A stretch of DNA of 64,000 bases from Macrostomum hystrix (GCA_950097015.1 CATNEN010000005.1:4216001-4280000), one strand, 5' to 3'; numbered from the stretch's first letter, positions 28,845 through 64,000 are shown. Program-made: numbers and translations. Notes: generated by a model not told the origin, from the sequence alone.

Positions 28845-31818
28845 TCAGTTGCCGTCGTGCTCAATTAGTAAGAACACAGTCTGGACACTCTCAGGTCTTG
28901 AGTTCGCACCCTGTTCATTGTTGGCAGGTGTTGCACAAACTATCGTGCTCCGTGGCATCATCACCGAGTAGGTGCAATTCTCCGCATTCTGAAGCATTTC
29001 ATTGTTGGGAGCGAGTCTTTCAAATAGTACAAAGACTGATCTTAGCCATTCGTGCTCAAGCCCCACATTAAACCCCATTGTTTGATGCTCCAAAGTCAGC
29101 CATAATGCACTCACATCGACTGTTGGGTCTCTGAATTGTGGCGGTGTCTCATGCAACTCAGCGTCGAACCCAGCCTGCTCCTCCTGTGAGCTGTCGCGAG
29201 TTCTCCTGGCACATCGCTGGAATGCACAGGTTGAGCAAAGTCAAACGCATTTACAATTTCACAATTTTGTTGTCAAATCGCTAATTACCTTGCCGATTAT
29301 GACAGCCATTCGAGTCACAATTACGGCTAGTACTACAGCGATCGGCACAAACAACGGTTTGAGAGACCTGTTAACCACTGTCTTCTTCAGTTCTGGTGTT
29401 GGCGACCATGTGCTTGAATAGCTGCCTGCATTTGTACCTGTTTCATCATCATAGTTACTTTCAGTTGTGCTATAGTATGCAGCTTGAGTTGTCTCAAACT
29501 TACTCGGAATGGTTGAGTCCGTTGTCAGAGGACAGGACACACTCTCTGTGGTGCTGTAGTTCCATGACAGTTTATCATCATTCCAATGTGCTGTGCATGT
29601 CACATTCACAGTCAGACAGTTTTCGCATTTCCAAATCGACCTGAATTTGCCGTCCACTTCAGTGACACTCGATGCAGTTGTTACTGTGGCATTTCCGTCC
29701 TGGTGGTCTCTCAGAAAGCATTTGTGCAGAGGATGTGGATCTGACTGCGTTGACTCGAAGGTGAAATTCCAATATGATGGCTCGGTGGCACAGGTGTCAT
29801 TTGAGTAGATGCTCAGTTTGCTTGGCGGATCTGAAATCGGGGATTGTCGAGTTTGTGAGACTCCAGACATTGCTGTGTGCGCTTGTGAAATGGCACTTTT
29901 GTGGAATTGATTGTATACTCACAGTAGACTTTGAGCAGTCGGGAGCTGAGGACCTCGTCATCCACTGTGCATGAGTAGTTGCCAGCGTGACTTTCGTTCA
30001 CATTTTGAATGGATTCTGACACGCTTCTTGCACTCGAGTTGCCAGAAGTTCGAATGGTGCTTCCGTTGGGCTTTGCGAGAGTCAGAATAACAGGTGCTGC
30101 ATGGCATACCTGGACAAGGCAGCTCACTGTGACGTTTGAGTTTCTCACAACCTCATAGAATGGCTCAATTGTAGCTAAATTTTTAAAGAACGATTGACTC
30201 AAGATTTGTTACATTGTTATAGAGAGATTCGCAAATATATTTTCTTGTGTCATTTTCAGTCATTGTCAGTAACTGCTTCCAAGGTTTACGAATTTGAACA
30301 CTAAAATGCTACCCATGCACTAGCAGGAGTTGGTTAGCAAGGTAAAGACTACTTTAATGTCACATCGAGCTGAAAATCTAACAATAATGTGTTCTTTCTA
30401 TACCGTGTTAATGGTTTTCACAGTTTTTCTGCTAGAAATCATAGAAAACATGCTTAAATTCCAGGTCTTTGTTTGTCTATTACAGTCCATTTTAGACTAT
30501 AAGCGTCGGGCTTTGTAATCAATTATGACTTTTTACGAGAATTATAATTACGAGTAAATAGAGATTTCATATAGTTAGAGAGATGATATATTGTAGTAAC
30601 ATAATTAGGCACGTTCGACAAACTCACCTTGTATTTCCAATTTATGAATCCACATACCAATAAAGTTCATGCACTGGTTTTGTGCATCAGAAACGTTTAC
30701 GACGTATTTTCTCAGCAAAATCATTCGGACCTGAAAACCGCATACAGTTTCTGGTTATGTCAGCACTGTTTCAATTTGGTGAAATAGAAGCGGAATAAAA
30801 TGTGCCTCTTTTTTGAGGTTACAGAAATTTGTCCCTAAAGAATGTGTATGTGACCCACATTCTCCATGCTAAATTACAGTCAACATTTGTGTTTTTGCTT
30901 GCTGTTTTATGCCTCGATCTTGAGTCATTTTGTTTGCAAATCTACTAAAATAAAATCAATGTGGATATTTTTCCAGAGAAACCCTAAGCTGCATTGCTGA
31001 TACAGAATATTGGCTTGCATTATACTCGCCTAATTAAACCCAAGGTTGCTCATGAATTATGTACCAGCAGTCACCTGATCGCCTCACCTGTTGCCTGACG
31101 CAGGGCACGCTCAAGTATTGTCCTGCAGAAACATTTGAGGGCGTCCTGCCGCACGGCTTCCAGATACCTGAGCTCTCTCCTCTGATGAAAGTAGAGCTGA
31201 TTTTCTTTGAGTCGCAGTGCTCATGTCCAAAATCGACGTCTGTTTGAGAAGTCCAGATCTCAATGTCTGCTCCTCTGGGGTTTATTTCAGCGATGGGAAC
31301 TTTATCTGCTTCTACAATGTCAATTAGTTATTTCTTTTGAGCTGCAAGCAAGAGCTTTAAGAGAATCGTTTGGAGCAGGTATTCAGTAGCTCTTGATTGT
31401 AAATTAACTGAATCGCTCACCTGCTCTGGCCCTGATGCCCACAGAGCTGATCAGCTCAGGCCTCTTCAGTTTGATCACAAACCAGTGATAGCCTGCATCT
31501 GTGTCATTCTTACTGGCTTTGGAGTGGAAGAATCTGTAGAAATACTTGGATTCTGTCTCTGTGGACTGGTTTTTAAAGCACAGTGCACCTTTACCGTGAT
31601 CAATAAAGCTGGACGACTGCCAGGAGTCAGCGATGGAATCTTTGGTGATGTTGAGAGTGCCTGAAACGAAAATAAGTTTAGAAACTTTGTCAGAATATAT
31701 CAGATGGTTCATTCCGAGCAATGTCCATGGACTGCAACTCACAACTGTCACTGTCAGCCGCACACATTCTAGCAAGGAGGGCCGTTGCCAGCAAAATGCA
31801 GTTTAGCGCTGCAGCCAT
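28845..31818 (-). CDS. Receptor copy A: signal peptide, F-type-lectin-like domain, 2 Ig-like domains, S/T stalk, TM and Tyr-motif tail (~560 aa). Exons 31818-31743, 31660-31421, 31311-31088, 30730-30628, 30174-29923, 29830-29289, 29216-29115, 28988-28845.
   Basis: Eight exons join in frame with canonical GT-AG sites. Signal MAAALNCILLATALLARMCAA; lectin-like FFHSK..HWFVIKL...ISSVGIRAR..ADIEIW..C; Ig VTVSC...SHAGNYSC; junction KVYYPP; TM LFVPIAVVLAVIVTRMAVII; tail CTYSVM. Confidence 0.8.
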
Positions 31819-32339
31819 GCCTCAACTTTGCCTGAAACCTTCAGCAGATGTCGATGCAGTAAATGCAGATCTGTCTCTACCCAATAAGGGATGTCAATTT
31901 ATACATGGGTTGTTACTTATGAAAACTTTTCGATCTACTTCAACTGTGTGTCTTTTACCTGATAAATTATTATAAATTATCGTCCAATATTTATTCCTCG
32001 ACGAATGCATGAAATGAGACAACTTTCGACTTAGTGAATCGCTCTGGTGCATATCTATTATATATCCTGTTTATCATTTATCAGACATGGAATTCATTTA
32101 TATTATCAGATTTGCGAATTGATTAAATGCTTACAGAAAGGTACGATATTTTATCATCTCTTTTTAATAGCGTTTTCATCCAAGCGCATCGTGCCAAATC
32201 GTTTCCTGACAAGAAAACCTGGCCCAACGGCTGAGTTGTCGGCAAGGACATTTAACTAGTGGAAAATTATTTCGTTCGAACACTGCACGCTCTGAGAAGT
32301 ATATCTACCCCATCATTTAGTAAAGTCATGAGTCATGAG

Positions 32340-32615
32340 TACACATTGTCCTCCTATACATTGTGTGAACCGCACCTAATGCGTCAGAACTTTTGAGTTC
32401 AACCCCTCCGCTATACGTAAACTACTTGTCTGCTAGGCGTCATTTACCGCACCCTTGTTCTATCGCAAGCTTACCGCGCGTTGATTGGCTGTCGGCCTGT
32501 CTGGCCTCCCCCCTGCTGGGCTGTGATTGGCCAGTGGATGTCTGGGTTGGGGTGGTGTGGTTTCAGGCGTCCCCCGGCCCCAAGCATGCCCTGGCATTAT
32601 AAGACTTTATAAGGT
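32340..32615 (+). promoter_or_regulatory. LTR-like or promoter-like repeat (truncated copy of 46981-47475)
   Basis: Two ATTGG (inverted CCAAT) boxes and TATAA; homologous to 47020-47290. Confidence 0.4.
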
Positions 32616-32933: not shown

Positions 32934-35900
32934 TCATTGTTGATTTTTGTCTTGATTCCAACATTCCAACTCTGAGCGGGCCCCATTGCCATCTGTATTT
33001 TGGCTGACTTGTAGAATGGCCTCACAGCACCTGATGTTTACCCTTTCAAAAAGACAGCGGTCCCAAGGACCCAGGTTCCACGAGACAAAAGCCACCCAGG
33101 CCTCGGAGGCGTACAGAGCTATGCTTTCTATCATTGCTGTGCAGCACAGCATGAGCTGATCGTGTCTGACCGCCCCATGGCTAGCTAATTTCCTTAAGAG
33201 AAGAATAGGGTATCCACATTATATGTTAATCTCTGCGGCATGGGAATACACAGTTCTTTTAGCATTGATGTGAAAGCCTAGATATTTCCATTATTTGACG
33301 CTATCAACGAGGGGTGTCCAAAAAGTAGTTGGAATTTTCAACGTAGCTCATAGTTGGATTCAGATACAATAATTTCGTTAACTTTTCTTGAAAGCGGATT
33401 TATCGATCTATTCAATGTTTTTTTATTTTGTAAATGTCTTCTGACATTCAAAAGTGATGAGCTATTTAGTACAGTTCCCAGGGTACGACTCACAGAAGAT
33501 GACATTTTGAAGGCTTTCAATGAAGAAAGTTTTGCTTTGTACTTTTTCTGCATTAAGTTTACACGATGATGCCTACAGAAATGCTTGAGCATATCTATGG
33601 GCTTAACATGAGAACTATGCTCATGCAAGCATCACCAAAGCCAGTCAGTCTCAAGCTTTAGATGCAAGCCAGCTCAGCCAAGCATTTGTCAACTTGCGCA
33701 TTCGAAGCATCCGAAGATTGTGCAAACATGTCGGACATCCACTCGAAAGAGGGACAGCACCTTGCTATTTTCACTCTGTGGAGCATTGGACACAATGGGT
33801 CCGAGATTGTGAGCAACCTGCAGCGCATCCATGGACAACATGCAGTAAGCAAAAGCACAGTTTACCGGTGGATTGAGGAGTTTCAGGCCGGTCGAACCAA
33901 TGTGGCGGCATTGCCAAAATCTGGTCGGCCAAGGATGCCCGCATCCAAGACTCTTAACGATCGCATTTTGGATCTGCTTGAAGAAGATGCTCGCCTTACC
34001 ATCAGGGAAATCGCTGACCGACTGGATACGCCCAAGTCCACAGTTCATCATTGCATCCCAGCATGAATCTCGTTAAGCTCAGTGCCAGGTGGGTTCCCAG
34101 GCTTCTCACCCCGGAGATGAAAGCACAGCGACAAAACACATGCAACAGCAACTTCAGGCTTGTTGAAGATCGAGGTGGATGGGAGGCCTTTCGACAGCTC
34201 ATTGTCACGGGTGATGAAACCTTGCTGCCTCACTTCGACCCCCCAACAAAAGAAGAGTCAAAAGTCTGGGCAATAAAGGGCTCTGATCCTCCAATCAAGG
34301 CTCGTCGAGAGGCTCATTGCCAGAATGAGCCAGAATGTTGCTGCTTTTTTTCGATTGTCACGACCCCTTGACAATCGATTTCCAAGAGCCAAACACAACT
34401 GTCAATGCGGAGCGCTACATCTTGTCTCTGATGAAGCTCAAGGCTGACATCCACAATAAACGGCTCAGTGGAATCAAGCCCTCAGTTCTCCACCACGACA
34501 ATGCCCGACCGCACACGGCTTCAAAGACAGTGGAGGCAATTCAGGGCATGAAGTTTGAACTCCTGCCTCACCCACCCTACTCACCTGGCTTGGCGCCAGC
34601 AGACTTTTGTCTTTTTCCGAGACTGAAGGAGCTGCTTCAAGGCAAAGTCTACGCGAATCGTCACTGCCTTGAAGAAGAGGTTCGGCGCATCCTTGTTTTT
34701 GCGATTCCCAAGCAGCAATACGCTCATGCAATTGATTCGTTGCGCACTCGCTGGGAGAAGTGCATCAGCTGCAAAGGTGACTACGTAGAGAAGGTCCCCA
34801 TCCCTGAGGAAAAGGACATTTGAGTTGATGTTAAGATGAACTTCAATGGGATTACGATTGATAGTTTTGTTGTCATGTTTCGTCTTAATGACTACTTGTT
34901 AAAGTTTCTGTAAGTTGTACCCTGCTGGGGAACTGCACTACATTTTTCATAACTTTTGAATGCCAGAAGATAAAAGCAAAATTAAAAAAGTATTAGAGAT
35001 ACAGAAATCCGCTTTCATAAAACGTATAGGAATTTAATGTGTCTGAATCCGATTATGAGCTACGTTGAAAACTCCCACTACCTTTTGGACACCCCCGTAA
35101 CAGTTGTCCCTGCAGAAATAGTTTTTAGCCGACTTTGATGGGTCAGGCAACAGCTAATAACCTTAGTTTTTCGCATATTGATTTCTAGCTTGTGGCTCTG
35201 ACAAAATTCTAACACCTTATCGAGGCCCTTCAGCAGCTCTCGCAGATTCTCTCCAAAGATCACTAGATGATCGCAGTACAGCAAGTTGTTGATTTGTTCA
35301 ACTTTAATGAAGGTGTCGCTACGAAATTAATCCCTTAGCATTGTGCTCAAAGGATCTATATAGAGTGAGAAGAGTAGAGGGATAGGGGGCAGCCTTGTTA
35401 TGTTTATTGCCTTAGTTGCTTGGCCATCTGAGACCTTCAGTTGAAATTTAGCCCCTGAGTACATGCTTTGTATTGCTTCGATTATTTCTGGGCTGACCTT
35501 TAACTCCCTAAGTCGCTGGAACAGTGTTGGATGGTGGACCAAATCAACTGCGCTTTTAAAATCAAAGAATACTAACTAAGTGAACTGGTATTTTGCTGTG
35601 GATCAACGTCAAGAGAGTGGCAATGTGGTCTGAAGTTCGCTAGCCCTTCTATTTCCTATTTGGCTGGCTGAAAGCAATTCGAGGGTGCGAATATGAGCTT
35701 CTAACTTTTCATAGATAAGTGAGGCAAACAGGCGAGCCAGGGCAGGCAGCACGCTTATGGGTCTGTAGTTTTTAGGGTCACTACGGGATACCATTTTACA
35801 GATCGGTGTGATTAGGGCATTTGACCACTGCGCAGGAGCTTGGTCGAGTCTTACGATTGCGTTAAATAGCTCCAGAAGTACGGGTTTTAGCGTTACCTGT
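32934..35900 (-). mobile_element. Degraded non-LTR retrotransposon (LINE) reverse transcriptase, interrupted by a mariner
   Basis: QWSNALITPI..DPKNYRPISVL, FDFKSAVDLV, PLLFSLYID, LLYCDHLVI (YADD site) and KLEINMRKTK right of the mariner; it resumes with WKYLGF and IALYASEAW left of it. Confidence 0.85.
33308..35097 (+). mobile_element. Mariner (DD34D) transposon with ~190-bp imperfect TIRs and two frameshifts in the transposase (33725-34823)
   Basis: TVYRWIEEF, SARWVPRLLT, VTGDET, HHDNARPH and HPPYSPGLAPADF, with 34 residues between the last two Asp. 33308-33497 is inverted-homologous to 34907-35097. TA at 35098-35099. Confidence 0.92.
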
Positions 35901-36872: not shown

Positions 36873-39840
36873 TCAGTTGCCGTCGTGCTCAATTAGTAAG
36901 AACACAGTCTGGACACTCTCAGGTCTTGAGTTCGCACCCTGTTCATTGTTGGCAGGTGTTGCACAAACTATCGTGCTCCGTGGCATCATCACCGAGTAGG
37001 TGCAATTCTCCGCATTCTGAAGCATTTCATTGTTGGGAGCGAGTCTTTCAAATAGTACAAAGACTGATCTTAGCCATTCGTGCTCAAGCCCCACATTAAA
37101 CCCCATTGTTTGATGCTCCAAAGTCAGCCATAATGCACTCACATCGACTGTTGGGTCTCTGAATTGTGGCGGTGTCTCATGCAACTCAGCGTCGAACCCA
37201 GCCTGCTCCTCCTGTGAGCTGTCGCGAGTTCTCCTGGCGCATCGCTGGAATGCACAGGTTGAGCAAAGTCAAACGCATTTACAATTTGACAATTTTGTTG
37301 TCAAATCGCTAATTACCTTGCCGATTATGACAGCCATCGGAGTGAAAATTACGGCTAGTACTACAGCGATCGGCACAAACAACGGTTTAAGAGACCTGTT
37401 AACCACTGTCTTCTTCAGTTCTGGTGTTGGCGACCCTGTGCTTGAATAGCTGCCTGCATTTGTACCTGTTTCATCATAGTTACTTTCAGTTGTGCTATAG
37501 TATGCAGCTTGAGTTGTCTCAAACTTACTCGGAATGGTTGAGTCCGTTGTCAGAGGACAGGACACACTCTCTGTGGTGCTGTAGTTCCATGACAGTTTAT
37601 TATTATTCCAATGTGCTGTGCATGTCACATTCACAGTCAGACAGTTTTCGCATTTCCAAATCGACCTGAATTTGCCGTCTACTTCAGTGACACTCGATTC
37701 CATTGTTACTGTGGCATTTTCGTTTGGGTGCCCTTGTAGAAAGCATTTGTGCAGAAGTTGTGGATCGGACTGCGTTGAATCAAAGGTGAAATTCCAAGCC
37801 GATGACTCAGTGACACAGGGGTCATTTGAGTAGATGCTCAGGTTGCTTGGCGGATCTGAGATCGGGGATTGTCGAGCTTGTGAGACTCCAGACATTGCTG
37901 TGTGCGCTTGTGAAATGGCACTTTTGTGGAATTGATTGTATACTCACAGTAGACTTTGAGCAGTCGGGAGCTGAGGACCTCGTCATCCACTGTGCATGAG
38001 TAGTTGCCAGCGTGACTTTCGTTCACATTTTGAATGGATTCTGACACGCTGCTGGCACTCGAGTTGCCAGAAGTTCGAATGGTGCTAATCGTGTTTTCAT
38101 CTCCGTTAGACTTTGCGAGAGTCAGAATAACAGGTGGCAGATTGACAGGTGCTTCGTGGCACACCTGGACCCGACAGCTCACTGTGACGTTTGAGTTTCT
38201 CACAACTTCATCGGATGGCTCAATTGTAGCTTAATTTTTTTAGAAACGAGTGACTTTTTTTTCTGGAGAAATTCGCAAAATAGATTTGCTCTTGTTATTT
38301 TGAGTAATTTTCAGTAACTGTTTTCCAAGATTTACGAATTTTAACATAAAAATGCTACCCATGCACTAGCAGGAGTTGGTTAGCAAGGTAAAGATTGCTT
38401 TAATGTCACATCGAGCTGAAAATCTAACAATAATGCGTTCCTTCTATACCGTGTTAATGGTTTTCACAGTTTCTTTGCTAGACATCATTGAAAACATGCT
38501 TAAATTCCAGGTCTTTGTTAGTCTATTACAGTCCATTTAAGACTATAAGCGTCGGGCTTTGTAATCAATGACTTTTTACGAGAATTATAATTACGAGTAA
38601 ATAGAGATTTCATATAGTTAGAGAGATGATATATTGTAGTAACATAAGGCAAGTGCCAAGTTCGACAAACTCACCTTGTATTTCCAATTTATGAATCCAC
38701 ATGCCAATGAAGCTCATGCACTGGTTCTGTGAATCAGAAACGTTTGCGACGTATTTTCTCAGCAGAATCATTCGGACCTGAAAGCCACATATAGTTTCTG
38801 GTTATGTCAGCACTGTTTAAACTAGGGCAGAATAGAAGCGGAAAAAAGAAGCGGAAAATGTGTTTCTTTTTGGGACCCACATTCTCCATGCTAAATTACA
38901 GTCAACATTTGTGTTTTTGCTTGCTGTTTTATGCCTCGATCTTGAGTCATTTTGTTTGCAAATCTACTAAAATAAAATCAATGTGGATATTTTTTCAGAG
39001 AAACCCTAAGCTGCATTGCTGATACAGAATATTGGCTTGCATTATACTCGCCTAATTAAACCCAAGGTTGCTCATGAATTATCAACCATCAGTCACCTGA
39101 TCGCCTCACCTGTTGCCTGATGCAGGGCACGCTCAAGTATTCTCCTGCAGAAACATTTGAGGGCGTCCTGCCGCACAGCTTCCAGATACCTGAGCTCTCT
39201 CCTCTAATGAAAGTAGAGCTGATGTTCTTTGAGTCGCAGTGCTCATGTCCAAAATCCACGTCTGTTTGAGAAGTCCAGATCTCAATGTCTGCTGCTCTAG
39301 AGTTTATTTCAGCGATTTTAACTTCTTTTGCTTCTACAATGTCAGTTAGTTTTTACTTTTGAGCTGCAAACAAGAGCTTGAAGAGAGTCGTTAGGAGCAG
39401 GTATTCAGAAGCTCTTGATTGTAAATTAACTGAATCGCTCACCTGACCTGGCCCTGATGCCCACAGAGCTGATCAGCTCAGGCCTCTTCAGTTTGATCAC
39501 AAACCAGTGATAGCCTGCATCTGCGTCATTCTTACTGGCCTTGGAGTGGAAGAATCTGTAGAAATACACGGAATGTGTCTCTGTGGTCTGGTTTTTAAAG
39601 CACAGCGTAGTATTATGCATATCAAGAAAGCTGGACGACTGCCACGAGTCAGCGATGGAATCTTTAGTGATGTTGAGAGTGCCTGAAATTAAAATTGATT
39701 CAGCAACTTTGTCAGAATATATCAGATGATTAATTCCGAGCAATGTCCATGGACTGCAACTCACAATTGTCACTGTCAGCCGCACACATTCTAGCAAGGA
39801 GGGCCGTTGCCAGCAAAATGCAGTTTAGCACTGCAGCCAT
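36873..39840 (-). CDS. Receptor copy B (same 8-exon architecture as A, long stalk)
   Basis: The exons I translated are open and splice sites are conserved; offset 8028 bp from A at the stop codon. TM LFVPIAVVLAVIFTPMAVII; tail essentially identical to A. Confidence 0.78.
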
Positions 39841-41460: not shown

Positions 41461-41724
41461 ATGCACTCAGTTAGAAAACAAACACTACTCTTATTCGCGA
41501 ATGCGACAACGCGACGACGCAGAGAAGGGGATCCCTCGCAAAGGACAGTTTTAATGCAATGCGCTTATCCATGATTGATTTCATGAACACAAACTCACCA
41601 TTTCTTATAGATAAACTCGCTGCGGTGCCTCATCGGAACGAAAGGAAGGAAGAAAGAAATCTCAGACGCAACTCATGAGAAGAGGCGGGGTAAAAATAGA
41701 GCAGCAGGTACAGCTGATCCTCAA

Positions 41725-42090
41725 ACTCATTCCGAATGGTTGAGTCCGTTGTCAGCGGACAGGACACACTCTCTGTGGTCCATGGCAGTTTAGAATCATT
41801 CCAATGTGCATGTGCATGTGCATGGCATGGTTTCGCAAAAGATTCACAAAATAGATTTGCTTTTTGTAATTTTCAGTCATTGCCAGTAACTGTTATTTAA
41901 GGTTTACGAATTTTAGCACAAAAATTAAGAAGTGTTACCCATGCACTAGCAGGAGTTGGTTACTAAGGTAAAGACTAGTAGTTTTAATGTAACTTACAAC
42001 TAAAAATCCAACAAGAAGAAGGCGTTCTCTCTACACCGTGAAAAAAAGCATCAGTTTGCACAGTTTCTTTGCTAGACAGCATTGAATAAG
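41725..42090 (-). pseudogene. Orphan deleted fragment of an A/B-type receptor gene (end of Ig2 exon plus intron 4 sequence)
   Basis: GAATGGTTGAGTCCGTTGTCAG.GGACAGGACACACTCTCTGTGGT and CCCATGCACTAGCAGGAGTTGG match copies A/B with internal deletions. Confidence 0.75.
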
Positions 42091-42898: not shown

Positions 42899-45836
42899 TC
42901 AGTCGCCATCGTGTTCGATTTCCAAGAAAACAGTCAGGTCACTGTCAGGTCTTGAACTCGTGCCCGCCTCATTAGTGCCAGGTGTTGCACTTACATTGGG
43001 ACGTTGTGTTACCAGTGCAGAGTAGATGCAGCTGTCCACATTCTGAAGAGTTTTAAGTTTGATTCCTAAAGCTATTGATTCAACACAGGCAAGCCAGCCG
43101 CTCAATATACATGTTATGCGCCCATGAATTAATCATTTTTACAAGGATTTAATTACGTACCAATTTTAAATGATGATACATCAATTGTCTGCTATAAACC
43201 ACCTGAATGATCAGACGCGCCCAAATCCTACCGCTAAAAGCCCGTCTGCAACCCGAACTGTACGTCACGGATTTACTCACTTCAGCTGTGGAGTCTCTAA
43301 ACAGTGGCGGTGATTCAATCAGCTCAGTCTCGAACCTAGCCCCCTCATGTGAGCAGTCGCGATTTCTAAAGACGCCCTTCTGCAACGGACGGTTCGAACA
43401 ACGAAAAATAGTTTTCCCTTTGATATTTGAACTCGTCATCACTGATTACCTTGCTGATAACGACTGCAAGCGAAGATCCAAGAACGGCGAGTCCTGCCAT
43501 GATCGCGAAAAGCACCGGCTTGAAAATGCGCTCTGTTCTCAAAATTTGTTTAGTTGGGGATAGGCTGGACTGAATTTTGAATTTTATTTTGTTTAAAATT
43601 TTCTGCTATATTATAATATTTACTATATGCAGCTTGAGTTGTTTTTTTAACTTACTCGGAATGTTTGGGTCCGATGTCAGAGGACAGGTCACACTTTCTG
43701 TCGTGCTGTAGCTCCATGACAGTTTATCATCATTCCAATGTGCTGTGCATGTCACAGACACAGGCAGACAGTTTTCGCATTTCCAAATCGACCTGAATTT
43801 GCCGTCCACTTCAGTGACACTCGATGCAGTTGTTACTGTGGCATTTTCGTCCTGGTGGTCTCTCAGAAAGCATTTGTGCAGAGGATGTGGATCTGACTGC
43901 GATGACTCAAAGGTGAAATTCCAATCCGACGACTCAGTGGCACAGGTGTCATTTGAGTAGATGCTCAGGTTGCTTGGCGGATCTGAGATCGGGGATTGTC
44001 GAGCTTGTGAGACTCCAGACATTGCTGTGTGCGCTTGTGAAATGGCACTTATGTGGAATTGATTGTATACTCACAGTAGACTTTGAGCAGTCGGGAGCTG
44101 AGGACCTCGTCACCCACTCTGCATGAGTAGTTGCCAGCGTGACTTTCGTTCACATTTTGAATGGATTCTGACACGCTGCTTGCACTCGAGTTGCCAGAAG
44201 TTCGAATGGTGCTAATCGTGTTTTCATCTCCGTTTGACTTTGCGAGAGTCAGAATAACAGGTGGCAGATTGACAGGTGCTTCGTGGCATTCCTGGATCCG
44301 ACAGCTCACTGTGACGTTTGAGTTTCTCACAACCTCATCGGATGGCTCAATTGTAGCTAATTTTTTAAAGAACGATTGACTCAAGATTAGTTACATTGTT
44401 ATAGAGAGATTCGCAAAATAGATTTGCGTTTGTTATTTTTAGTCATTGTCAGTAACTGTTTTCCAAGGTTTACGAATTTGAACACTAAAATGCTACCCAT
44501 GCACTAGCAGGATTTGGTTAGCAAGGTAAAGACTACTTTAATGTCACATCGAACTGAAAATCCAACAAGAATGCGTTTTTGTGACAGAATATAGTTAGAA
44601 TATAGTTAGAGAAAGGATTTATTGTAGTAACATAGGGCACGTTCGACAAACTCACCTGCTAATACAATTTTTCGAATCCACATGCTAATGAAGCTCATGC
44701 ACTGATTGTTTGCACTAACGTTTGCGACGTATTTTCTCAGCAGAATCATTCGGACCTGAAAGCCGCATACAGTTTCTGGTTATGTCAGCACTGTTAATAT
44801 ATGGTGAAATTGAAGCGGAATAAAATGTGCTTCTTTTTAGTGGTTATAGAAATTTGTCCCTAAAGCATGTGACCCACATTCTCCATGCTAAATTACAGTC
44901 AACATTTGTGTTTTGCTTGCTGCTTTCTGCCTCGATCTTTAGTCATTTTGTTTGCAAATCTATTAAAATAAAATCAATGTGGATAATTCTCTAGAGAAAC
45001 CCTAAGCTGCACTGCTGATACAGAATATTGGCTTGCATTATACTCGCCTAATTAAACCCAAGGTTGCTCATGAATTATGAACCATCAGTCACCTGATCGC
45101 CTCACCTGTTGCCTGACGCAGGGCACGCTTAAGTATTGTCCTGCAGAAACATTTGAGGGCGTCCTGCCGCACAGCTTCCAGATACCTGAGCTCTGTCCTC
45201 TAATGAAATTAGAGCTGATGTTCTTTGAGTCGCAGTGCTCATGTCCAAAATCCACGTCTGTTTGAGAAGTCCAGATCTCAATGTCTGCTGCTCTAGAGTT
45301 TATTTCAGCGATTGTAACTTCTTTTGCTTCTACAATGTCAGTTAGTTTTTACTTTTGAGCTGCAAACAAGAGCTTGAAGAGAGTCGTTAGGAGCAGGTAT
45401 TCAGAAGCTCTTGATTGTAAATTAACTGAATCGCTCACCTGACCTGGCCCTGATGCCCACAGACCTGATCAGCTCAGGCCTCTTCAGTTTGATCACAAAC
45501 CAGTGATAGCCTGCATCTGCGTCATTGTTACTGGCTTTGGAGTGGAAGAATCTGTAGAAATGCTTGGATTCTGTCTCTGTGGTCTGGTTTTTAAAGCACA
45601 GCGCAGTATTATGCATATCAAGAAAGCTGGACGACTGCCACGAGTCGGCGATGGAATCTTTGGTGATGTTGAGAGTGCCTGAAACGAAAATTGATTCAGA
45701 AACTTTGTAAGAATATATCAGATGATTCCTTCCGAGCAATGTCCATGAACTGCAACTCACAATTGTCCCTGTCAGCCGCACACTTTCTAGCAAGGAGGGC
45801 CGTTGCCAGCAAAATGCAGTTTAGCACTGCAGCCAT
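42899..45836 (-). CDS. Receptor copy C (9 exons, short stalk with intron, different TM and tail)
   Basis: Exons open. After PNIP the frame uses a GTAAGT donor to a TM exon KRIFKPVLFAIMAGLAVLGSSLAVVISK; tail NVDSCIYSAL...DLTVFLEIEHDGD*. Confidence 0.78.
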
Positions 45837-48795: not shown

Positions 48796-49102
48796 TAGGC
48801 ACTTAGGCTAGGTTAGGCTAGGATTCCCCGGCTCGAGTCCCCAGTGCGGCTGGCAAATTAATTGTCTTAATGGATGCCACCTGCTACTTTCAGTAACAGT
48901 CAGTGTGCTAAGTAACATTTTTTCTTTTGTATGTTTCACGTATGTTTCACGTTTTTAAGCTGAATGCTAAATGAGATTATCGCTTACATTTGCGATTGGC
49001 TGCTGCATTCAATACAGAAATTTCTGTATTGACAGGGTACAGTTTGTACAGGTACAAAGGCGAATGTACAAATCCACTATACTAAAAATGAAATGCTTGC
49101 TA

Positions 49103-49620
49103 AACCAGAGTCTGAATCATGGCTAAACCAGCGTCTGAATCATGGCTAAACCAGCGTCTGAATCATGGCTAAAGCAGAGTTTGAATCATGGCTAAACCAG
49201 AGTCTGAATCATGGCTAAACCAGCGTCTGAATCATGGCTAAACCAGCGTCTGAATCATGGCTAAAGCAGAGTTTGAATCATGGCTAAACCAGAGTCTGAA
49301 TCATGGCTAAACCAGAGTCTGAATCATGGCTAAACCAGAGTCTGAATCATGGCTAAACCAGAGTCTGAATCATGGCTAAACCAGAGTTTGAATCATGGCT
49401 AAACCAGAGTCTGAATCATGGCTAAACCAGAGTTTGAATCAAGGCGAAACCAGAGTTTGAATCATGGCTACACCAGAGTTTAAATCATGGCTAAAACAGA
49501 GTTTGAATCATGGCTAAAGCAGACTTTAAATCATCACAGCGTCTGAATCATGGCTAAACCAGAGTTTGAATCATGGCTAAATTAGAGTTTGAATCATGGT
49601 AAAACGAGAGTTTGAATCAT
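49103..49620. repeat. 23-bp minisatellite (AAACCAGAGTCTGAATCATGGCT)
   Basis: Period 23 read directly. Confidence 0.92.
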
Positions 49621-49689
49621 AGCCCACCAGGGTTTAAAACATGGCGGAACCTGAGTTTGAATCTTGGCTAACCCAGCGTTTGAAAAATC

Positions 49690-51975
49690 AACGTCAACTG
49701 GGGAGTCATCATCAAAATGGGGATCAAGGTAAACTGGGTGATCATCATCAACTGGGGGATCATTGTCAACTGGAGGAACATTGTCAGCTGGAGGAACATT
49801 GTTAACTGGGGATCATCATCAATGGGAAGACTTCATCAACTGGGGGATCATTGTGAACTGGGGGATCTTTGTTAACTGGGGAATCATTCTCAACTGGTGG
49901 ATCATTCTCAACTGGGGGATCATCATCAACTGGGGGATCATTGTGAACTGGGGGATCATTGTCAACTGTGGGATCATTGTCAACTGGGGGATCGTTGTCA
50001 ACTGGGGGATCATTTTCAAATGGGGGATCATCATCAACTGGGGGATCATCATCAACTGGGGGATCATCATCAACTGGGGGATCATTGTGAACTGGGCAAA
50101 ACGAGAGTTTGAATCATAGCCCACCAGGGTTTAAAACATGGCGAAATCTGAGTTTGAATCTTGGCTTACCCAGCGTTTGAAAAATCAACGTCAACTGGGG
50201 AGTCATCATCAAAATGGGGATCATGGTAAAATGGGGGATAATCGTCAACTGGGGGATCATGGTAAACTGGGGGATAATTGTCAACTGGGGAATCATCATC
50301 AAATGGGGGATCATGGTCAACTTGGGGATCATTGTCAACTGGGTGATCATCATCAACTGGGGATCATCATCAACTGGGGGTTCATTGTCAACTGTGGGAT
50401 CATTGTCAACCGGCGGGATCATTGTCAACTGGGGGATCATTGTCAACTGGGGGATCATTGTCAACTGGGGGGTAATGTTCAACTGGGGGATAATTGTCAA
50501 CTGGGGAATCATCATCAAATGGGGGATCATGGTCAACTTGGGGATCATTGTCAACTGGGTGATCATCATCAACTGGGGGATCATCATCAACTGGGGGATC
50601 GTTGTCAACTGGGGGTTCATTGTCAACTGTGGGATCATTGTCAACTGGGGGATCATTGTCAACTCGGGGATCATTGTGAACTGGTGGATCGTTGTCAACT
50701 GGGGGTTCATTGTCAACTGGGTGATCATCATCAACTGGGGGATCATTGTCAATTGGGGGAACATTGTCAACTGGAAGAACATTGTTAACTGGGGATCGTC
50801 ATCAATGGGGAGTCATCATCAACTGGGGGATCATGGTGAACTGGAGGATCTTTGTCAACTGGGGGATCATTGTCAACTGGGGGATCATTGTCAACTGGGG
50901 GATCATTGTCAACTGGGGGATCATTGTCAACTGGGGGATCATTGTCAACTGGGGGTTCATTGTCAACTGGGGGATCATTGTCAACTGGGGGATCATTGTC
51001 AACTGGGGGATCGTTGTCAACTGGGGGTTCATTGTCAACTGGGGGATCATTGTCAACTGGGGGATCATTGTCAACTGGGGGATCATCATCAACTGGGGGA
51101 TCATTGTCAACTGGGGGTTCATTGTCAACTGTGGGATCATTGTCAACGGGCGGGATCATTGTCAACTGGGAGATCATCATCAACGGGGGGATCATCATCA
51201 AATGGGGGATCATTGTCAACTGGGGGATCATTGTCAACTGGGGGTTCATTGTCAACTGGGGGATCATTGTCAACTGGGGGATCATTGTCAACTGGGGGAT
51301 CGTTGTCAACTGGGGGTTCATTGTCAACTGGGGGATCATTGTCAACTGGGGGATCATTGTCAACTGGGGGATCATCATCAACTGGGGGATCATTGTCAAC
51401 TGGGGGTTCATTGTCAACTGTGGGATCATTGTCAACGGGCGGGATCATTGTCAACTGGGAGATCATCATCAACGGGGGGATCATCATCAAATGGGGGGAT
51501 CATTGTCAACTGTGGGATCATTTTCAACTGGGGGTTCATTGTCAACTGGGGGATCAATGTCAACTGGGGGATCATTGTCAACTGGGGGATCGTTGTCAAC
51601 TGGGGGTTCATTGTCAACTGGGGGATCATTGTCAACTGGGGGATCATTGTCAACTGGGGGATCATCATCAACTGGGGGATCATTGTCAACTGGGGGTTCA
51701 TTGTCAACTGTGGGATCATTGTCAACGGGCGGGATCATTGTCAACTGGGAGAACATCATCAACGGGGGGATCATCATCAAATGGGGGATCATTGTCAACT
51801 GTGGGATCATTGTCAACTGGGAGATCATCATCAACGGGGGGATCATCATCAAATGGGGGATCATTGTCAACTGTGGGATCATTTTCAACTGGGGGATCAT
51901 TGTCAACTGGGGTATTATTGTCAACTGGAGGTTCATTGTCAACTGGGGGATCATTGTCAACTGGGGGATCATTGT
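49690..51975. repeat. 18-bp minisatellite (CAACTGGGGGATCATTGT), over 100 copies
   Basis: Period 18; it produces the QLGDHC, NWGIIV and TGGSLS repeat ORFs. Confidence 0.95.
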
Positions 51976-52534
51976 AGCTTTAAAAAGCTGTAAATTCAGC
52001 TGCTAAAAAGTATATACTAGACGAATTAAAAGTATTTCTGCTCCCCGAAGGGGGGCAAAACTTGCTAGTTATTTCCTAAACGGAAAGTAGTTCAGGGATG
52101 CCATTCTTCACTTCCGGATCAGAATTGCAGCTGTTTGTGATGGAAGATCGGATATCATTTTTAAAATCAGTGTATAAATATAGCTTTTTATTTATGGCCA
52201 AGAATACAGCTTTCCAAGCTGCGAAATAAATTTTATAAAATTCACTATAAAAAACTTGGCCCTGCAATGTCGCATCCTGTTTGTCTTGGTTCAGTACAAT
52301 TTGGCTATTTGTACTGCAAATTACCTGCACACTATTCCTCGTTTCCTTGTTATTTCCTTGCAAACAACGGCTTACCAGTAATTTTAGAGGTCCAGAAATA
52401 TACATAAAATATAAAATTAATCCGCATGGATGAAAAACGACAAACCTTTTTAGTAAAGCCAGCTATAATCCAGCTATAAGGCTACAGATTCGGCGTGACA
52501 AACACATTAATTTAACCCCAGTAAATGAAATTAA

Positions 52535-53421: not shown

Positions 53422-56361
53422 TCAGTCGCCATCGTGTTCGATTTCCAAGAACACAGTCAGGTCACTGTCAGGTCTTGAACTCGTGCCCGCCTCATTAGTG
53501 CCAGGTGTTGCACTTACATTGGGACGTTGTGTCACCAGTGCAGAGTAGATGCAGCTGTCCACATTCTGAAGAGTTTTAAGTTTGATTCCTAAAGCTTTTG
53601 ATTCAACACAGGCAAGCCAGCCACTCCAACTACATGTTATGCGCCCAAGTATTTATCATTTTTAAAGGATTTAATTGTGTACCAATTTTTAATGTTGATA
53701 AATCAATTGTCTGCTATAAACCACCTGAATGATCAGACGCGCCCATATCCTACCGCTAAAAGCCCGTCTGCAACCCGAACTGTACGTCACGGATTTACTC
53801 ACTTCAGCTGTGGAGGCTCTAAACAGTGGCGGTGATTCAATCAGCTCAGTCTCGAACCTAGCCTCCTCATGTGAGCAGTCGCGATTTCTAAAGACGCCCT
53901 TCTGCAACGAACGGTTCGAACAACGAAAATTAGATTTCCCTTTGATATTTGAACTCGTCATCACTGATTACCTTGCTGATAACGACCGCAAGCGAAGATC
54001 CAAGAACGGCGAGTCCTGCCATGATCGCGAAAAGCAACGGCTTGAAAATGCGCTCTGTTCTCAAAATTTGTTTAGTTGGGGATAGGCTGGACTGAATTTT
54101 GAATTTTCTTTTGTTTAAAATTTTCTGCTATATTATAATATTTACTATATGCAGCTTGAGTTGTTTTTTTAACTTACTCGGAATGTTTGGGTCCGATGTC
54201 AGAGGACAGGTCACACTTTCTGTGGTGCTGTAGTTCCATGACAGTTTATCATCATTCCAATGTGCTGTGCATGTCACATTCACAGTGAGACAGTTTTCGC
54301 ATTTCCAAATCGACCTGAATTTGCCGTCCACTTCAGTGACACTCGATTGCATTGTTACTGTGGCATTTTCGTCTTGGTGGTCTCTCAGAAAGCATGTGTG
54401 CAGAGGATGTGGATCTGACTGCGATGACTCAAAGGTGAAATTCCAATCCGACGACTCAGTGGCACAGGTGTCATTTGAGTAGATGCTCAGGTTGCTTGGC
54501 GGATCTGAGATCGGGATTGTCGAGTTTGTGAGACTCCAGACATTGCTGTGTGCGCTTGTGAAATGGCACTTTTGTGGAATTGATTGTATACTCACAGTAG
54601 ACTTTGAGCAGTCGTGAGCTGAGGTCCTCGTCACCCACTCTGCATGAGTAGTTGCCAGCGTGACTTTCGTTCACATTTTGAATGGATTCTGACACGCTGC
54701 TTGCACTCGAGTTGCCAGAAGTTCGAATGGTGCTTACGTTTTTGCTTCCGTTGGACTTAGCGAGAGTCAGAATAACAGGTGGCAGATTGACAGGTGCTTC
54801 GTGGCACACCTGGACCCGACAGCTCACTGTGACGTTTGAGTTTCTCACAACTTCATCGGATGGCTCAATTGTAGCTAAATGTTTTAAGAAACGAGTGACT
54901 CAAAAATGTTTACATTTTTTTATGGAGAGATTCGCAAAATAGATTTGCTGTTGTTATTTTTAGTCATTGTCAGTAACTGTTTTCCAAGGTTTACGAATTT
55001 GAACACTAAAATGCTACCCATGCACTAGCAGGAGTTGGTTAGCAAGGTAAAGACTACTTTAATGTCACATCGAACTGAAAATGCAAACAATAATGCGTTT
55101 TTTGTGACAGAATATAGTTAGAATATAGTTAGAGAAAGGATTTATTGTAGTAACATAGGGCACGTTCGACAAACTCACCTGCTAATACAATTTTTCGAAT
55201 CCACATGCTAATGAAGTTCACGCACTGATTGTTTGCATCAGTAACGTTTGCGACGTATTTTCTCAGCAGAATCATTCGGACCTGAAAGCCGCATACAGTT
55301 TCTGGTTATGTCAGCACTGTTAATATAGGATGAAATAGAAGCGAATAAAATGTGTTTCTTTTTAGTGGTTACAGAAATTTGTCCCTAAAGTATGTGACCC
55401 ACATTCTCCATGCTAAATTACAGTCAACATTTGTGTTTTTGCTTGCTGTTTTATGCCTCGATCTTGAGTCATTTTGTTTGCAAATCTACTAAAATAAAAT
55501 CAATGTGGATATTTCTCCAGAAAACCCTAAGCTGCATTGCTGATACAGAATATTGGCTTGCATTATACTCGCCTAATTAAACCCAAGGTTGCTCATGAAT
55601 TGTGAAACATCAGTCACCTGATCGCCTCACCTGTTGCCTGACGCAGTTCACGCTCAAGTATTGTCCTGCAGAAACGCTTGAGGGCGTCCTGCCGCACAGC
55701 TTCCAGATACCTGAGCTCTCTCCTCTAATGAAAGTAGATCTGATGTTCTTTGAGTCGCAGTGCTCATGTCCGAAATCGACGTCTGTTTGAGAAGTCCAGA
55801 TCTCAATGTCTGCTGCTCTGAGGTTTATTTCAGCGATGGGAACTCCTATTGCTTCTACAATGTCAATTAGTTATTTCTTTTGAGCTGCAAACAAGAGCTT
55901 GAAGAGAGTCGTTAGGAGCAGGTATTCAGAAGCTGTTGATTGTAAATTAACTGAATCGCTCACCTGACCTGGCCCTGATGCCCACAGAGCTGATCAGCTC
56001 AGGCCTCTTCAGTTTGATCACAAACCAGTGATAGCCTGCATCTGCGTCATTGTTACTGGCTTTGGAGTGGAAGAATCTGTAGAAATACTTGGATTCTGTC
56101 TCTGTGGTCTGGTTTTCAAAACATAGTGCACCTTTCTTGTTATCAATAAAGCTAGACGACTGCCAGGAGTCAGCGATGGAATCTTTGGTGATGTTGAGAG
56201 TGCCTGAAACAAAAATTGATTTAGAAACTTTGTAAGAATATATCAGATGATTCCTTTCGAGCAATGTCCATGGACTGCAACTCACAATTGTCACTGTCAG
56301 CCGCACACAGACTAGCTAGAAGGGCCGCTGCCAGCAAAATGCATTCCTGGGCTGCAGCCAT
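53422..56361 (-). CDS. Receptor copy D (C-type stalk, TM and tail; different 5' UTR)
   Basis: The exons I translated are open. Signal MAAAQECILLAAALLASLCAA. A 1-bp indel relative to A-C lies inside the predicted Ig1-Ig2 intron, which supports the splice model. Confidence 0.78.
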
Positions 56362-57349: not shown

Positions 57350-57670
57350 TCACTCCGCAGCCGCAGCCCAACCGTTTTCGATATCCTCGGGCACAGGAAA
57401 CAGTGGGTTGACTCCTTGAACACCAAGAAATTCCGGGACGACATGAGCCCGTTGATCATCCTCAACGGTGACTTCTCTCCATTCGTCGAACGCCTCCGGC
57501 ATTTCTTCAGCCTGAACTGGATTGTCCTCTTTATCCGTCCCTTCATCACTCACAGCCGTGTAGTAGGAGTCGCTTTCGCTTGAATCGCTGCTGTCCAAGC
57601 CCAAACGGCGAAGTGCCTGCTTTACAGCCTGTCGTCTCTCTCTCCTTGGAGCATTCATGTTGGTAGCCAT
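57350..57670 (-). mobile_element. piggyBac-like transposase N-terminal fragment
   Basis: Acidic N-terminus DSSDSSESDS...EEM followed by W....VPEFLGVQGVNP, as in PGBD-type transposases. Upstream 30-bp direct repeats CTATGGCCAGCAGAGCATGCC(A/G)AGTGGTAA at ~57759 and ~57834. Confidence 0.5.
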
Positions 57671-58110: not shown

Positions 58111-58145
58111 TTTTATTGGTATCGTTTGCTCTAGGCTTGGCAAAG

Positions 58146-60470: not shown

Positions 60471-60479
60471 ATTGCCCAC

Positions 60480-61775: not shown

Positions 61776-62051
61776 CTAAAGTCCGTCAGCCATAATCACC
61801 TGATAGAATGTGACGTCACTTACAGGTCGCGAGTTCGAGCACCCAGCTCCATTCGCAGCATCAGCGCCACCATTTCGTTTGTCCTTCGTCATCATGGACA
61901 GGTAGGTACAGCTGACGCCGTCCTGAAATTAGAATTTCAACCTGAATCAGCAGATATTTCTTTGGAACAGATTAAAGTACAGCAACCAAAACTCGGCTTA
62001 CATCACTGTTCGCATCTGTGACATTGTCAGAAGGAATTGGCTCTGGAGATG
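61776..62051 (-). other. Duplicated last two tail exons of receptor E (62051-62002, 61922-61776)
   Basis: Near-identical to 62998-63275, with an open last exon DGVSCTYLSMM...VTFYQVIMADGL* and its own TTTTTCCAG acceptor. Confidence 0.65.
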
Positions 62052-62997
62052 CTGGAAAAATCTATGGTTAAACTGTTAAATACTTTACTTATTTTAGTAT
62101 CTATGGTCTAAACTGAATATTAAAATGCTGGTCTTGAAATAAACTGTCTAAAATTAATATTGAGTTGTCTAAATTTAACATCGGGTGTTTTGAAATAGAA
62201 TGGGAAAATGTGTATCATTATTATTATTGAGGGGCGCACGCCGATTGGGTGCTGATTTTTTGTTTATTTGATGTTTGAGGCTGAACAATTCGATTTTTAA
62301 AAAAGAAGACGATAGGAAAACAGTAGCATGCATAAGATTAATTTTAGGTGAATAAAATATTTGAAAGAAAACTAGTATTTAAAATAAACAAAGGCATTAA
62401 AACAAAAATAAAATATTGAAATTTAAAGAGAAAATAAAACTGTGACTGAAATCACTAGACTAATGTAAAAGGTTTTAAAAAATGTAACGGATTTAGTCCG
62501 AAAGCAGATTAAACTCAATAGTTAAAGGTGACTTTATTGAACCATAAATAAGTAGATTATAAGATTCCCTTGATTACTCCTTGATTAAAATTGAAATTAG
62601 GGAATTTACTAACTTTAAATAACAATTTAGATGCAAGCATGAGACGCACGATTCTAACCAACCTTTAATGACCGTAGCGACAAAAAATATGCCGAATTTT
62701 CTGGATAATGTTAAATTATGTTAATAAAGCAATTATCAGGTTTAAAATCAGCATATACAGATTAGGCTATAAAGACAATATGGAAACAAAATTAGTAAAA
62801 GTACATATATTAAAAACTTCACGCGACGCATCAAGAGCAGCATATTCGTGTATACTCAACATTACAATTTTTGCTTACAAAACAAAAAATTCGCTTTCAG
62901 GAGTAGTAAACGCTAAATAGTAGGTCAATAAATTATAAAATAGCAGGCTGCCTGAATAAAAATGTTTTTAAACAATCGACTCGAATTAGAGTTTGTT

Positions 62998-64000
62998 TCA
63001 GCGTGCATCAGCCACAATCTCCTGATACAATGTGACCTCACTTACAGGTCGCGAGTTCGAGCACCCAGCTCCATTCGCAGCATCAGCGCCACCATTTCGT
63101 TTGTCCTTTGGCATCATGGACAGGTAGGTACAGCTGATGCCGTCCTGAAATTAGAATTTCAACCTGAATCAGCAGAGAGTTCTTTGGAACAGAGTAAAGT
63201 ACTGCAACGAAAACTCGGCTTACATCACTGTTCGCATCTGTGACATTGTCAGAAGGAATCGGCTCTGGAGATGCTGCCGACAGCTGCTGCAATGGCACTG
63301 CCTCTTCGGATAACTCTGGCTTCACTGACTTTGCTGGAGGTGTCATTGGTGCGGCCCTCTGAAAGTTTAAAAAAATTGTGAGCTGAAGATTCAGAAGAGC
63401 TTTTATACTAGTTATTTAGAGTACCCAGATTAGGACAATCCTACCTTTCTTCGCCAAAAACATATGATGAGAACTGACAAGATGAGGGTGCAAGCAATGC
63501 TCAGTCCAAGGAAATTAATATAAATCGATCTTTTATACTCGTTGCCTTCTACAAATTTCGAACGGTGACTTACGAGTACATGTGCGTGGCTAGTGAGTGA
63601 AGCAAATCTGTACCTTTTGTTTTTGAGGAGTTCACACTCGCGTTCTCATAGATTTCAAAGTGTGAACTCGGAAAAGAAATCGTCTTAATCACACTAGACG
63701 GCAGCCAGGAAACATTCGCTTGAGCTGCAGTGCATTTCAGTGTGACAAGCGTTCCGTTTTCCCCTTGACAGCAGTTGAGGCACTTCCAGTGTGATGTCAA
63801 GGAGTCAAGGGTGGAGCTGATGAAGCTCTTATTCCATGCCTCACTCGACACTGTCAAGTTGTTCCCGAAGCTATCGAATGCACTGCACTGATGCTCTGAT
63901 TTTGGGTCTGAGCTGGAAGATAAGAAGCTGAATGTCACGTGACCTGACGGCTCTTCGCTGCAGCTCGAGTTGTCAACCGTGATTTCCAGTGTCTCTGGTG
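62998..64000 (-). CDS. Receptor copy E, a divergent paralog, 5' part outside the window. Exons >64000-63614, 63548-63445 (TM), 63358-63224, 63144-62998.
   Basis: Ig2-like PPETLEI...SDPKSEHQC...WKCLNC...VTLKCTA aligns with copies A-D; TM IYINFLGLSIACTLILSVLIICFWRRK; tail SCTYLSMM...NSRP.SEVTLYQEI. Exon phases are consistent. Confidence 0.78.

Follow-up and report, generated by a model that had tools for sequence, protein, structure and literature searches.

A transcribed tandem cluster of candidate jelly-roll-headed, immunoglobulin-domain surface receptors in Macrostomum hystrix, with module exchange between two tail classes

The window analyzed here is a stretch of 64,000 nucleotides from the flatworm Macrostomum hystrix (CATNEN010000005.1:4216001-4280000). 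It carries a transcribed, spliced, multi-copy gene family in which modules have been exchanged between two classes of cytoplasmic tail. We read the family as a tandem cluster of genus-restricted type I surface glycoproteins with a jelly-roll head that probably binds glycans and an output through a tail tyrosine, and we put the probability of this reading at roughly 0.6. The head, of the galactose-binding-domain type and closest to an F-type lectin or a discoidin domain, would be carried on two immunoglobulin (Ig)-like domains and, in the class of tails we call A only, on a Ser/Thr-rich stalk as well, followed by a transmembrane helix and a tail of about 80 residues. The extracellular ligand of the head would most probably be a glycan, bound by the loops that surround a conserved R-x-E ... 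R, and the predicted binding face is the variable loop face of the head. The tail tyrosine in C-x-Y-x-x-L/M would then relay occupancy to the inside of the cell, through phosphotyrosine/SH2 signalling or through uptake driven by adaptors. The original prediction, made from the sequence, had described a spliced tandem family with a signal peptide, a lectin-like head, two Ig-like domains, a stalk, a transmembrane segment and a tail, and all of this is correct.

Four full copies of one gene (c1 to c4) lie on the minus strand, in register as direct repeats that are 8022, about 6000-6127 and about 10522 bases apart. The eight-exon model of c1 was built from open frames and splice signals, and the other copies were modelled by projecting it through a four-way genomic alignment. 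Used as a tblastn query, the spliced c1 protein finds all exons of each of the four copies. Copy c1 (28845-31818) has a class A tail and an open translation of 560 amino acids over eight small exons, the length that had been predicted. Its exons are 31818-31743, 31660-31421, 31311-31088, 30730-30628, 30174-29923, 29830-29289, 29216-29115 and 28988-28845, the last including the stop. Exons 2-4 (30628-31660, residues 26-214, phase 1 in and out) encode the putative galactose-binding-domain-like jelly roll, which is F-type-lectin/discoidin-like. Exon 5 (29923-30174, 252 bases, symmetric phase 1-1) encodes the first Ig domain, Ig1. The first part of exon 6 (29505-29830) encodes the second Ig-like domain and the remainder (29289-29504) the Ser/Thr-rich stalk and the transmembrane helix. 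Exons 7 and 8 (28845-29216) supply the cytoplasmic tail, with the motifs N-C-T-Y-S-V-M and T-V-F-L-L-I-E-H-D-G-N. Copy c2 (36873-39840; exons 39840-39765, 39682-39443, 39333-39110, 38777-38675, 38229-37948, 37855-37317, 37244-37143 and 37016-36873) also has a class A tail; its frame is open for 569 amino acids and the splice sites projected from c1 are all GT..AG. Copies c3 and c4 have class B tails and 524 amino acids each, with an inferred stalk intron at 43533-43655 in c3 and at 54055-54177 in c4. The exons of c3 (42899-45836) are 45836-45761, 45678-45439, 45329-45106, 44755-44656, 44356-44075, 43982-43656, 43532-43450, 43379-43281 and 43042-42899; those of c4 (53422-56361) are 56361-56286, 56203-55964, 55854-55631, 55281-55179, 54874-54596, 54504-54178, 54054-53972, 53901-53803 and 53565-53422.

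The RNA evidence consists of assembler contigs from four public runs, all of the same organism and of a library type that is no more than a guess. The four runs contain roughly half of the sequence words sampled from the c1 locus, as expected for exons only. The contigs on 28400-32100 have seven CT..AC joints (GT..AG on the minus strand), every one of them at a predicted c1 exon boundary. Most of these joints are seen in three or four runs, and several contigs have 0 mismatches. The contigs must represent spliced RNA despite the guessed library type because a contig skips seven GT..AG introns. A check of the junctions against RNA had been proposed, with the lack of spliced transcripts named as a result that would sink the idea; all seven c1 introns are confirmed by spliced contigs from four runs, and that objection does not apply. 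A 66-base intron in the c1 stalk was also considered and is ruled out by RNA contigs that run continuously across 29289-29830. The GT..AG splice sites are conserved in all four copies. Some RNA contigs carry variant letters that match c3/c4 (e.g. at 29750, 29778, 29961 and 29967) or c2/c3, so more than one paralog is transcribed.

The stalk differs between the copies. When exon 6 is read through in c3 and c4, a stop appears in the stalk. Both copies have a GTAAGT donor with a phase-compatible AG 123 bases downstream, and removal of this interval opens the 524-residue frames. We tentatively infer a 123-base stalk intron in c3 and c4, and these two genes would be intact only if it is removed. 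Across the inferred c3 intron and its 60-base flanks the share of words found in RNA is 0.17 in two runs; by calculation, splicing would give about 0.28 and retention 1.0. The DNA of the inferred introns in c3 and c4 is homologous to the Ser/Thr-rich stalk coding DNA of c1 and c2 (c1 29373-29504), and the GTAAGT donor of the stalk is present in all four copies. It is likely that an intron was gained or lost from coding sequence between these paralogs.

Divergence between the copies changes along the gene. From exon 1 through the second Ig-like domain all copy pairs are close, with 0.05-0.13 synonymous substitutions per site (dS). From the stalk onward class A (c1 and c2) and class B (c3 and c4) are deeply diverged: the tails reach dS 0.62-0.73 and 0.30 nonsynonymous substitutions per site (dN), and introns 6 and 7, 44-48% different, can hardly be aligned from one class to the other. 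Tails of the same class barely differ (dS 0.02-0.04). The simplest reading of these sequences is that two old stalk, transmembrane and tail modules have had their ectodomain recently homogenised or swapped by gene conversion or unequal crossing-over, and by the same reading the breakpoint of the module exchange would lie at the end of the second Ig-like domain. Between classes the tail dN/dS is 0.3-0.5, and therefore the tails are under constraint. It could be argued that the whole array is non-functional, an annotation artefact made of pseudo-exons in a segmental duplication, since decayed, stop-bearing fragments lie among the copies and the spacers are filled with transposon remnants and minisatellites. 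This idea has next to nothing left to recommend it. It is refuted by the spliced transcripts of four runs, by the open frames of 524-569 amino acids with conserved splice sites in all four copies, and by the constrained tails.

The ectodomain has evolved differently from the tails. Its dN/dS is 0.5-0.85, reaching 1.28 in the head for c2-c3, and the divergence of the head exons equals or exceeds that of the flanking introns (exon 2 differs by 4.6% between c2 and c3, intron 2 by 0%). Variable sites are enriched in the head loops 44-51 and 105-117, where 11 of 21 sites vary compared with 31 of 168 (Fisher p 0.0013); the loop 105-117 sits between two conserved Arg residues. These comparisons suggest relaxed or diversifying selection on the ectodomain, which is short of proof.

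We now turn to the fold of the head. It is divided over three exons and single head exons have no Pfam match. Across 22 family pieces, six have sub-threshold matches to PF00754 (F5_F8_type_C; best E 0.0037), PF22633 reaches E 0.032, also under the gathering score, and these two, all sub-threshold, are the sole Pfam matches of the head. The protein language-model (ESM) features of head exon 2 point the same way, at 0.96 to the PF22633/PF00754 clusters. A structural model was obtained with AlphaFold2 (AF2) for residues 1-215 of the M. lignano relative P0013, with the twelve head exons of the window among the alignment rows. Its mean predicted local distance difference test (pLDDT) is 66 and its predicted template-modelling score (pTM) 0.68; the strands are confident and the loops 54-72 poor. 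Foldseek against the PDB places this model in the galactose-binding-domain-like superfamily (SUN, APC10, CBM32, galactose oxidase N-domain), with E about 1e-5 for SUN, APC10 and CBM32, and Foldseek against Swiss-Prot models returns the same superfamily. The top group in VIA-align, at Z 10.2-10.8, consists of F5/8-C chitobiase domains, CBM32, the eel fucolectin 1K12 and the F-lectin domain of lectinolysin; 1K12 scores Z 10.5 over 144 of 158 residues and lectinolysin Z 10.2-10.3 at a root-mean-square deviation of 2.8. The best match among AlphaFold DB clusters is unnamed (28% identity) and is probably a relative in the receptor family; the next, and best named, is an FTP-domain protein. A shape search of the ESM Atlas with the head returns carriers of F5/8-C and PF22633. 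We conclude that the head models as a galactose-binding-domain-like jelly roll of the discoidin/F-lectin type. A head that failed to fold as a jelly roll had been named as grounds for rejecting the prediction, and both Foldseek and VIA-align find the fold.

Whether the head is an F-type lectin in the strict sense is a separate matter. F-type lectins are defined by their fold, by the motif H-x24-R-x-D-x4-(R/K), by a motif for calcium (h-h-D-G-x) and, in the binding loop, by two adjacent Cys residues (PMC5712786). With members such as the Anguilla anguilla agglutinin 1K12, lectinolysin and MsaFBP32 the head model shares the jelly roll, at Z of about 10 over 130-144 aligned residues, and in profile alignment the strand motifs line up (H-S, H-W-F versus P-W-W, S-V-x-I, R-x-acid). 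Searched against PDB sequences, the family profile has 1K12 as its best match. There S-V-x-I-x-x-R-x-(D/E) aligns to S-V-T-I-T-N-R79-G-D81 and the later Arg to R86, so that the conserved R-x-(D/E) and following R of the family fall on R79/D81/R86. The motifs F-H-S, R-[AS]-E and the Arg before A-D-I-E-I, which had been likened to an F-lectin triad, are present as claimed. We tried to equate the invariant His of F-H-S with His52 of 1K12 and it cannot be placed: the gapless profile alignment gives His47, and the loop has pLDDT below 50 in the model. Discoidin/F5/8 type C and CBM32 modules have the same superfamily fold and score equally with the F-lectins. The claim of an F-lectin head thus stands as to the jelly roll and falls short as to type, since F-type cannot be separated from CBM32 or F5/8-C by fold and the fucose motif is unmatched. 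We call the head F-lectin-like within the discoidin/galactose-binding-domain superfamily, its membership among F-type lectins being unproven.

The two Ig-like domains differ in how readily they are recognized. The exon for the first (exon 5, 252-282 bases across copies, phase 1-1) matches Pfam Ig_2 at 27.9 bits (cut-off 27, E 2.8e-6) and ig at 21.9 (cut-off 21.8), and by these above-threshold scores Ig1 is predicted to be an immunoglobulin-superfamily domain. This exon varies in length in frame. In the comparison of 30000-30130 with 38060-38200, c1 is without two 15-base segments (P-V-N-L-P and D-E-N-T-I) that are present in c2 and c3; c4 has the first, and the second as a 12-base version, so the loops of Ig1 vary in length. 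The second domain (the first 108 residues of exon 6) has no Pfam match. It has nine invariant positions, four of them Cys, in common with M. lignano, and its ESM features lie at 0.89-0.93 to C2-set/C1-set clusters. Its AF2 model is an eight-strand all-beta sandwich with pLDDT 74, only one of five models being confident, and Foldseek matches it to MuSK Ig3, BTN3A IgC, SYG-2 D4 and MHC II beta2 with TM-scores of 0.5-0.6 and E of about 1e-3. The second domain thus models as an Ig-like sandwich.

Each protein has a hydrophobic N-terminus, 15-18 N-glycosylation sequons and one transmembrane helix followed by basic residues; in c1 this is a hydrophobic stretch of 21 residues and then K-R-C-A-R-R. 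All four full copies keep the tail motif C-(T/I)-Y-S-(V/A)-(M/L) and, near the C-terminus, T-V-F-L-x-I-E-H-D-G. The tail motifs are conserved between both classes and with M. lignano, where P0003 has C-S-Y-L-S-V and T-V-Y-L-E-I at the corresponding places. The canonical immunoreceptor tyrosine-based inhibitory motif (ITIM), (S/I/V/L)-x-Y-x-x-(I/V/L), and switch motif (ITSM), T-x-Y-x-x-(V/I), have no match in the four full copies, which have C at -2 (C-T-Y-S-V-M, C-I-Y-S-A-L). An ITSM fit is found only in the divergent partial copy (T-L-Y-Q-E-I) and in a tail fragment (T-F-Y-Q-V-I), both described below. On these alignments the four full copies have lost the tyrosine of the ITSM-like motif and have retained one Y-x-x-hydrophobic motif. 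Of the tyrosine-motif tails that had been predicted, then, the C-x-Y-x-x-(L/M) element is kept and the canonical signalling motifs are missing from the full copies.

The tail could also be read in another way. Y-x-x-hydrophobic is a sorting consensus. The proteins might be endocytic or scavenger lectin receptors that capture glycosylated material, for example in gut phagocytes or epidermis, with the tail tyrosine serving as a clathrin-adaptor sorting signal and not as a phosphotyrosine switch. The only tyrosine kept in all tails is in Y-S-V-M or Y-S-A-L, which fits that consensus and is unlike a canonical ITIM or ITSM at -2, and the second motif is without its tyrosine in the four full copies. 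However, the partial copy, the tail fragment and P0003 of M. lignano keep a T-x-Y-x-x-I that resembles a signalling ITSM. We regard the scavenger idea as possible and on the unlikely side.

It is important to be candid about the evidence that weighs against our own reading of glycan-binding receptors with a tyrosine output. The head model is of a M. lignano homolog and not of a protein from the window, with the mean pLDDT given above and less than 50 in the candidate His loop. The fold matches include superfamily members that are not lectins (SUN, APC10, CEP104). The profile match to 1K12 (E 0.54) does not rise above noise, chance matches such as acetyl-CoA synthetase are all that PDB sequences yielded to single-sequence queries, and no profile matches the head above the Pfam gathering score. 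A regular expression allowing x24-26 finds the strict fucose motif in none of the four copies, which actually have H-x32-R-x-E-x11-R. The loop from R-x-E to the next R, longer than that of F-lectins, has no Cys in any copy, and the adjacent Cys82-Cys83 pair is missing. The calcium motif h-h-D-G-x is unmatched too: the copies have F-I-D-H-G, F-L-D-M-H or F-I-D-N-K, varying among themselves. M. lignano P0003 has F-G-D-G-Q at this stretch. The enriched loops were chosen after inspection of the data and the counts are small, and the head, Ig1 and the second Ig-like domain are similarly variable (22-25% of sites). Finally, the ITSM-like tyrosine is replaced by Phe in every full copy.

Some of these points would favor an adhesion or recognition molecule whose head binds protein and not sugar, a generic module as in SUN, APC10 and the collagen- or lipid-binding discoidin domains. 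The top Foldseek matches are superfamily members that bind proteins (SUN2, APC10 and BIRC6/UBR4 modules), and the sugar and calcium motifs of F-lectins are unmatched. The top ranks in VIA-align, on the other hand, are sugar-binding modules (chitobiase F5/8-C, CBM32, F-lectins), and the whole family conserves the basic, acidic and basic residues aligned to R79/D81/R86, which bind fucose. We judge a protein-binding head improbable to about the same degree as the scavenger receptor, and prefer a head that probably binds glycans.

The family has a narrow range in our searches. An exhaustive phmmer search with exon 2 returned nine proteins, among which the true relatives are Macrostomum lignano proteins and one metagenome contig; P0001 (cystatin repeats), P0004 and P0006 are low-complexity false positives. 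Searching by word index, first with a relative of full length and then with the profile of the family, returned M. lignano and the metagenome contig only. The c1 protein is 32-37% identical to its M. lignano relatives over 200-290 residues (blastp E 1e-42 for P0010 and 1e-36 for P0013), and the homology spans the head, the second Ig-like domain and the tail motifs. No paper was found in searches of the literature for the family, for its M. lignano gene ids and for F-type lectins in Macrostomum, and the statement that this is not a recognised named family agrees with what we find. The possibility of an already known architecture like that of DDR or neuropilin had been raised as an alternative and does not apply: the kinase, CUB/MAM and LamG/EGF partner domains of DDR, neuropilin and Caspr-type discoidin receptors have no Pfam match in the window exons or the M. 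lignano relatives, and the tail has only about 80 residues. DDR (kinase), neuropilin (CUB, MAM) and bacterial glycosidases carry their discoidin or CBM32 modules in contexts that differ from the Ig, Ig, transmembrane, tyrosine-tail order here. As far as these comparisons reach, the family appears to be genus-restricted and a new combination of known parts.

An intronless HOP2/PSMC3IP homolog in the same window (14610-15263, plus strand) gives a point of reference for rate: it shares 76% identity with M. lignano HOP2 and no more than 44% with anything else, which by itself assigns the window to a Macrostomum-type flatworm distinct from M. lignano. The 32-37% identity of the receptors is far below this, but the orthology of the compared receptors is not established and old paralogy may contribute. 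A genus-restricted, fast-evolving family could by analogy consist of mating or gamete-recognition receptors, like the F-lectin bindin of oyster sperm, diversifying under sexual selection in a hermaphrodite genus with sexual conflict. F-lectin bindins are a precedent for gamete recognition (PMC5712786), and the identity gap with HOP2 would fit. The same doubt about orthology counts against this idea, as the rate contrast may partly be old paralogy, and we consider a mating role quite unlikely.

Beyond the four full copies the cluster includes a divergent partial fifth copy (62998-64000, minus strand) that runs past the window end. Its frames and splice signals were read from the sequence: a second-Ig-like and stalk exon from 63998 to a donor near 63614 or 63574, a transmembrane exon at 63548-63445, a tail exon at 63358-63224 and a last exon at 63144-62998. 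In tblastn with the c1 protein the Ig-like part (63726-63998) has 34% identity over 91 amino acids (E 2.8e-5), and the last exon carries S-C-T-Y-L-S-M and V-T-L-Y-Q-E-I. Four full copies and a divergent partial one had been predicted and were recovered by direct repeats and tblastn, and where two fragments had been claimed there are three, all on the minus strand. A duplicated pair of tail exons at 61779-62061 is 95% identical to 63003-63276 as a direct repeat and has S-C-T-Y-L-S-M and V-T-F-Y-Q-V-I. A decayed head exon 3 at 47560-47787 has in-frame stops (tblastn 51-60% identity, E about 1e-14), and the C-terminal end of a second Ig-like domain lies at 41699-41830 (76% identity over 33 amino acids, E 8.5e-9).

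The surrounding DNA is rich in repeats. Just past the 3' untranslated region of c1, at 28648-28771, RNA contig depth is 286-654 compared with about 5-20 for the gene, with many different loose ends; this element is a high-copy transcribed repeat. A Mariner-type transposase remnant in three overlapping frames (33662-34823, plus strand) lies in the c1-c2 spacer, and a reverse-transcriptase-like open reading frame (ORF) lies at 35327-35542 on the minus strand. In the interval from c3 to c4, the stretches 49000-49626 and 49752-52000 are long minisatellite arrays with periods of 23 and 18. Their GC skew is pronounced (0.28 in 50001-52000), and every frame shows long ORFs that are spurious. An acidic ORF at 57350-57670 (minus strand) is presumably the N-terminal part of a piggyBac-type transposase. 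Nearer the start of the window, three further tandem repeat blocks with repetitive ORFs on the plus strand (12676-13370, 13907-14404 and 19410-20150) adjoin rhomboid-like and RPAP1-like coding pieces.

How does this family compare with known receptor systems? Like the present family, the FREPs of gastropods and the Alr genes of Hydractinia are expanded, clustered invertebrate recognition genes with Ig domains. A jelly-roll head is absent from both; FREPs are secreted and have a fibrinogen domain, and Alr proteins have Ig-type heads. The Siglecs and the paired Ig-type lectin receptors, following the logic of KIR, LILR and SIRP, offer the closer analogy, with a sugar-binding-type tip, Ig spacers, a transmembrane segment and a tyrosine tail. 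The Siglec-like design that had been proposed holds as an analogy in these respects, and it does not extend to a canonical ITIM or ITSM in the full copies. In Siglecs it is an N-terminal V-set Ig domain that binds sialic acid, whereas here the N-terminal tip is a predicted jelly roll. As in paired-receptor clusters, near-identical ectodomains sit on different transmembrane and tail modules in one cluster; unlike them, both tail classes here share one motif set without a clear activating/inhibitory split, and there is no sequence relationship. We considered an activating/inhibitory pairing of the two classes and it is unsupported, given the shared motifs and the transmembrane arginine of c1 that is a Pro in c2. 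Drosophila Furrowed/CG9095 are membrane F-lectin proteins with a role in adhesion (PMC5712786). Furrowed is likewise membrane-anchored with an F-lectin-type domain, but it combines this with a C-type lectin domain and many CCP repeats, in contrast to the Ig-like domains here, where Pfam gives no CCP or C-type lectin match. The partner domains listed for F-lectins are C-type lectin, pentraxin, CCP, FA58C and transmembrane segments, and Ig is not among them (PMC5712786). The present family adds to that list an F-lectin-like, Ig and transmembrane combination.

The boldest interpretation is a flatworm-specific, germline-encoded recognition system, in which a diversifying lectin-type head would be shuffled by gene conversion onto alternative stalk, transmembrane and tail modules and would discriminate non-self, whether microbes, conspecific tissue or mating partners. 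We hold this to be a speculative and rather improbable extension of the surface-glycoprotein reading. If true, it would mean that the paired-receptor logic of vertebrate Siglecs, KIR and LILR had been invented independently, on a binding domain that is not Ig. The immune or allorecognition role that had been proposed for the cluster would be one candidate setting, besides mating and feeding. Innate recognition receptors of flatworms are poorly known, and Macrostomum is tractable through RNA interference, transgenesis, regeneration and mating biology. Expressed, with a lectin-type head, Ig domains, a tyrosine tail and swaps of the ectodomain, the family is a concrete candidate for the way in which variable recognition at the cell surface is built in a spiralian.

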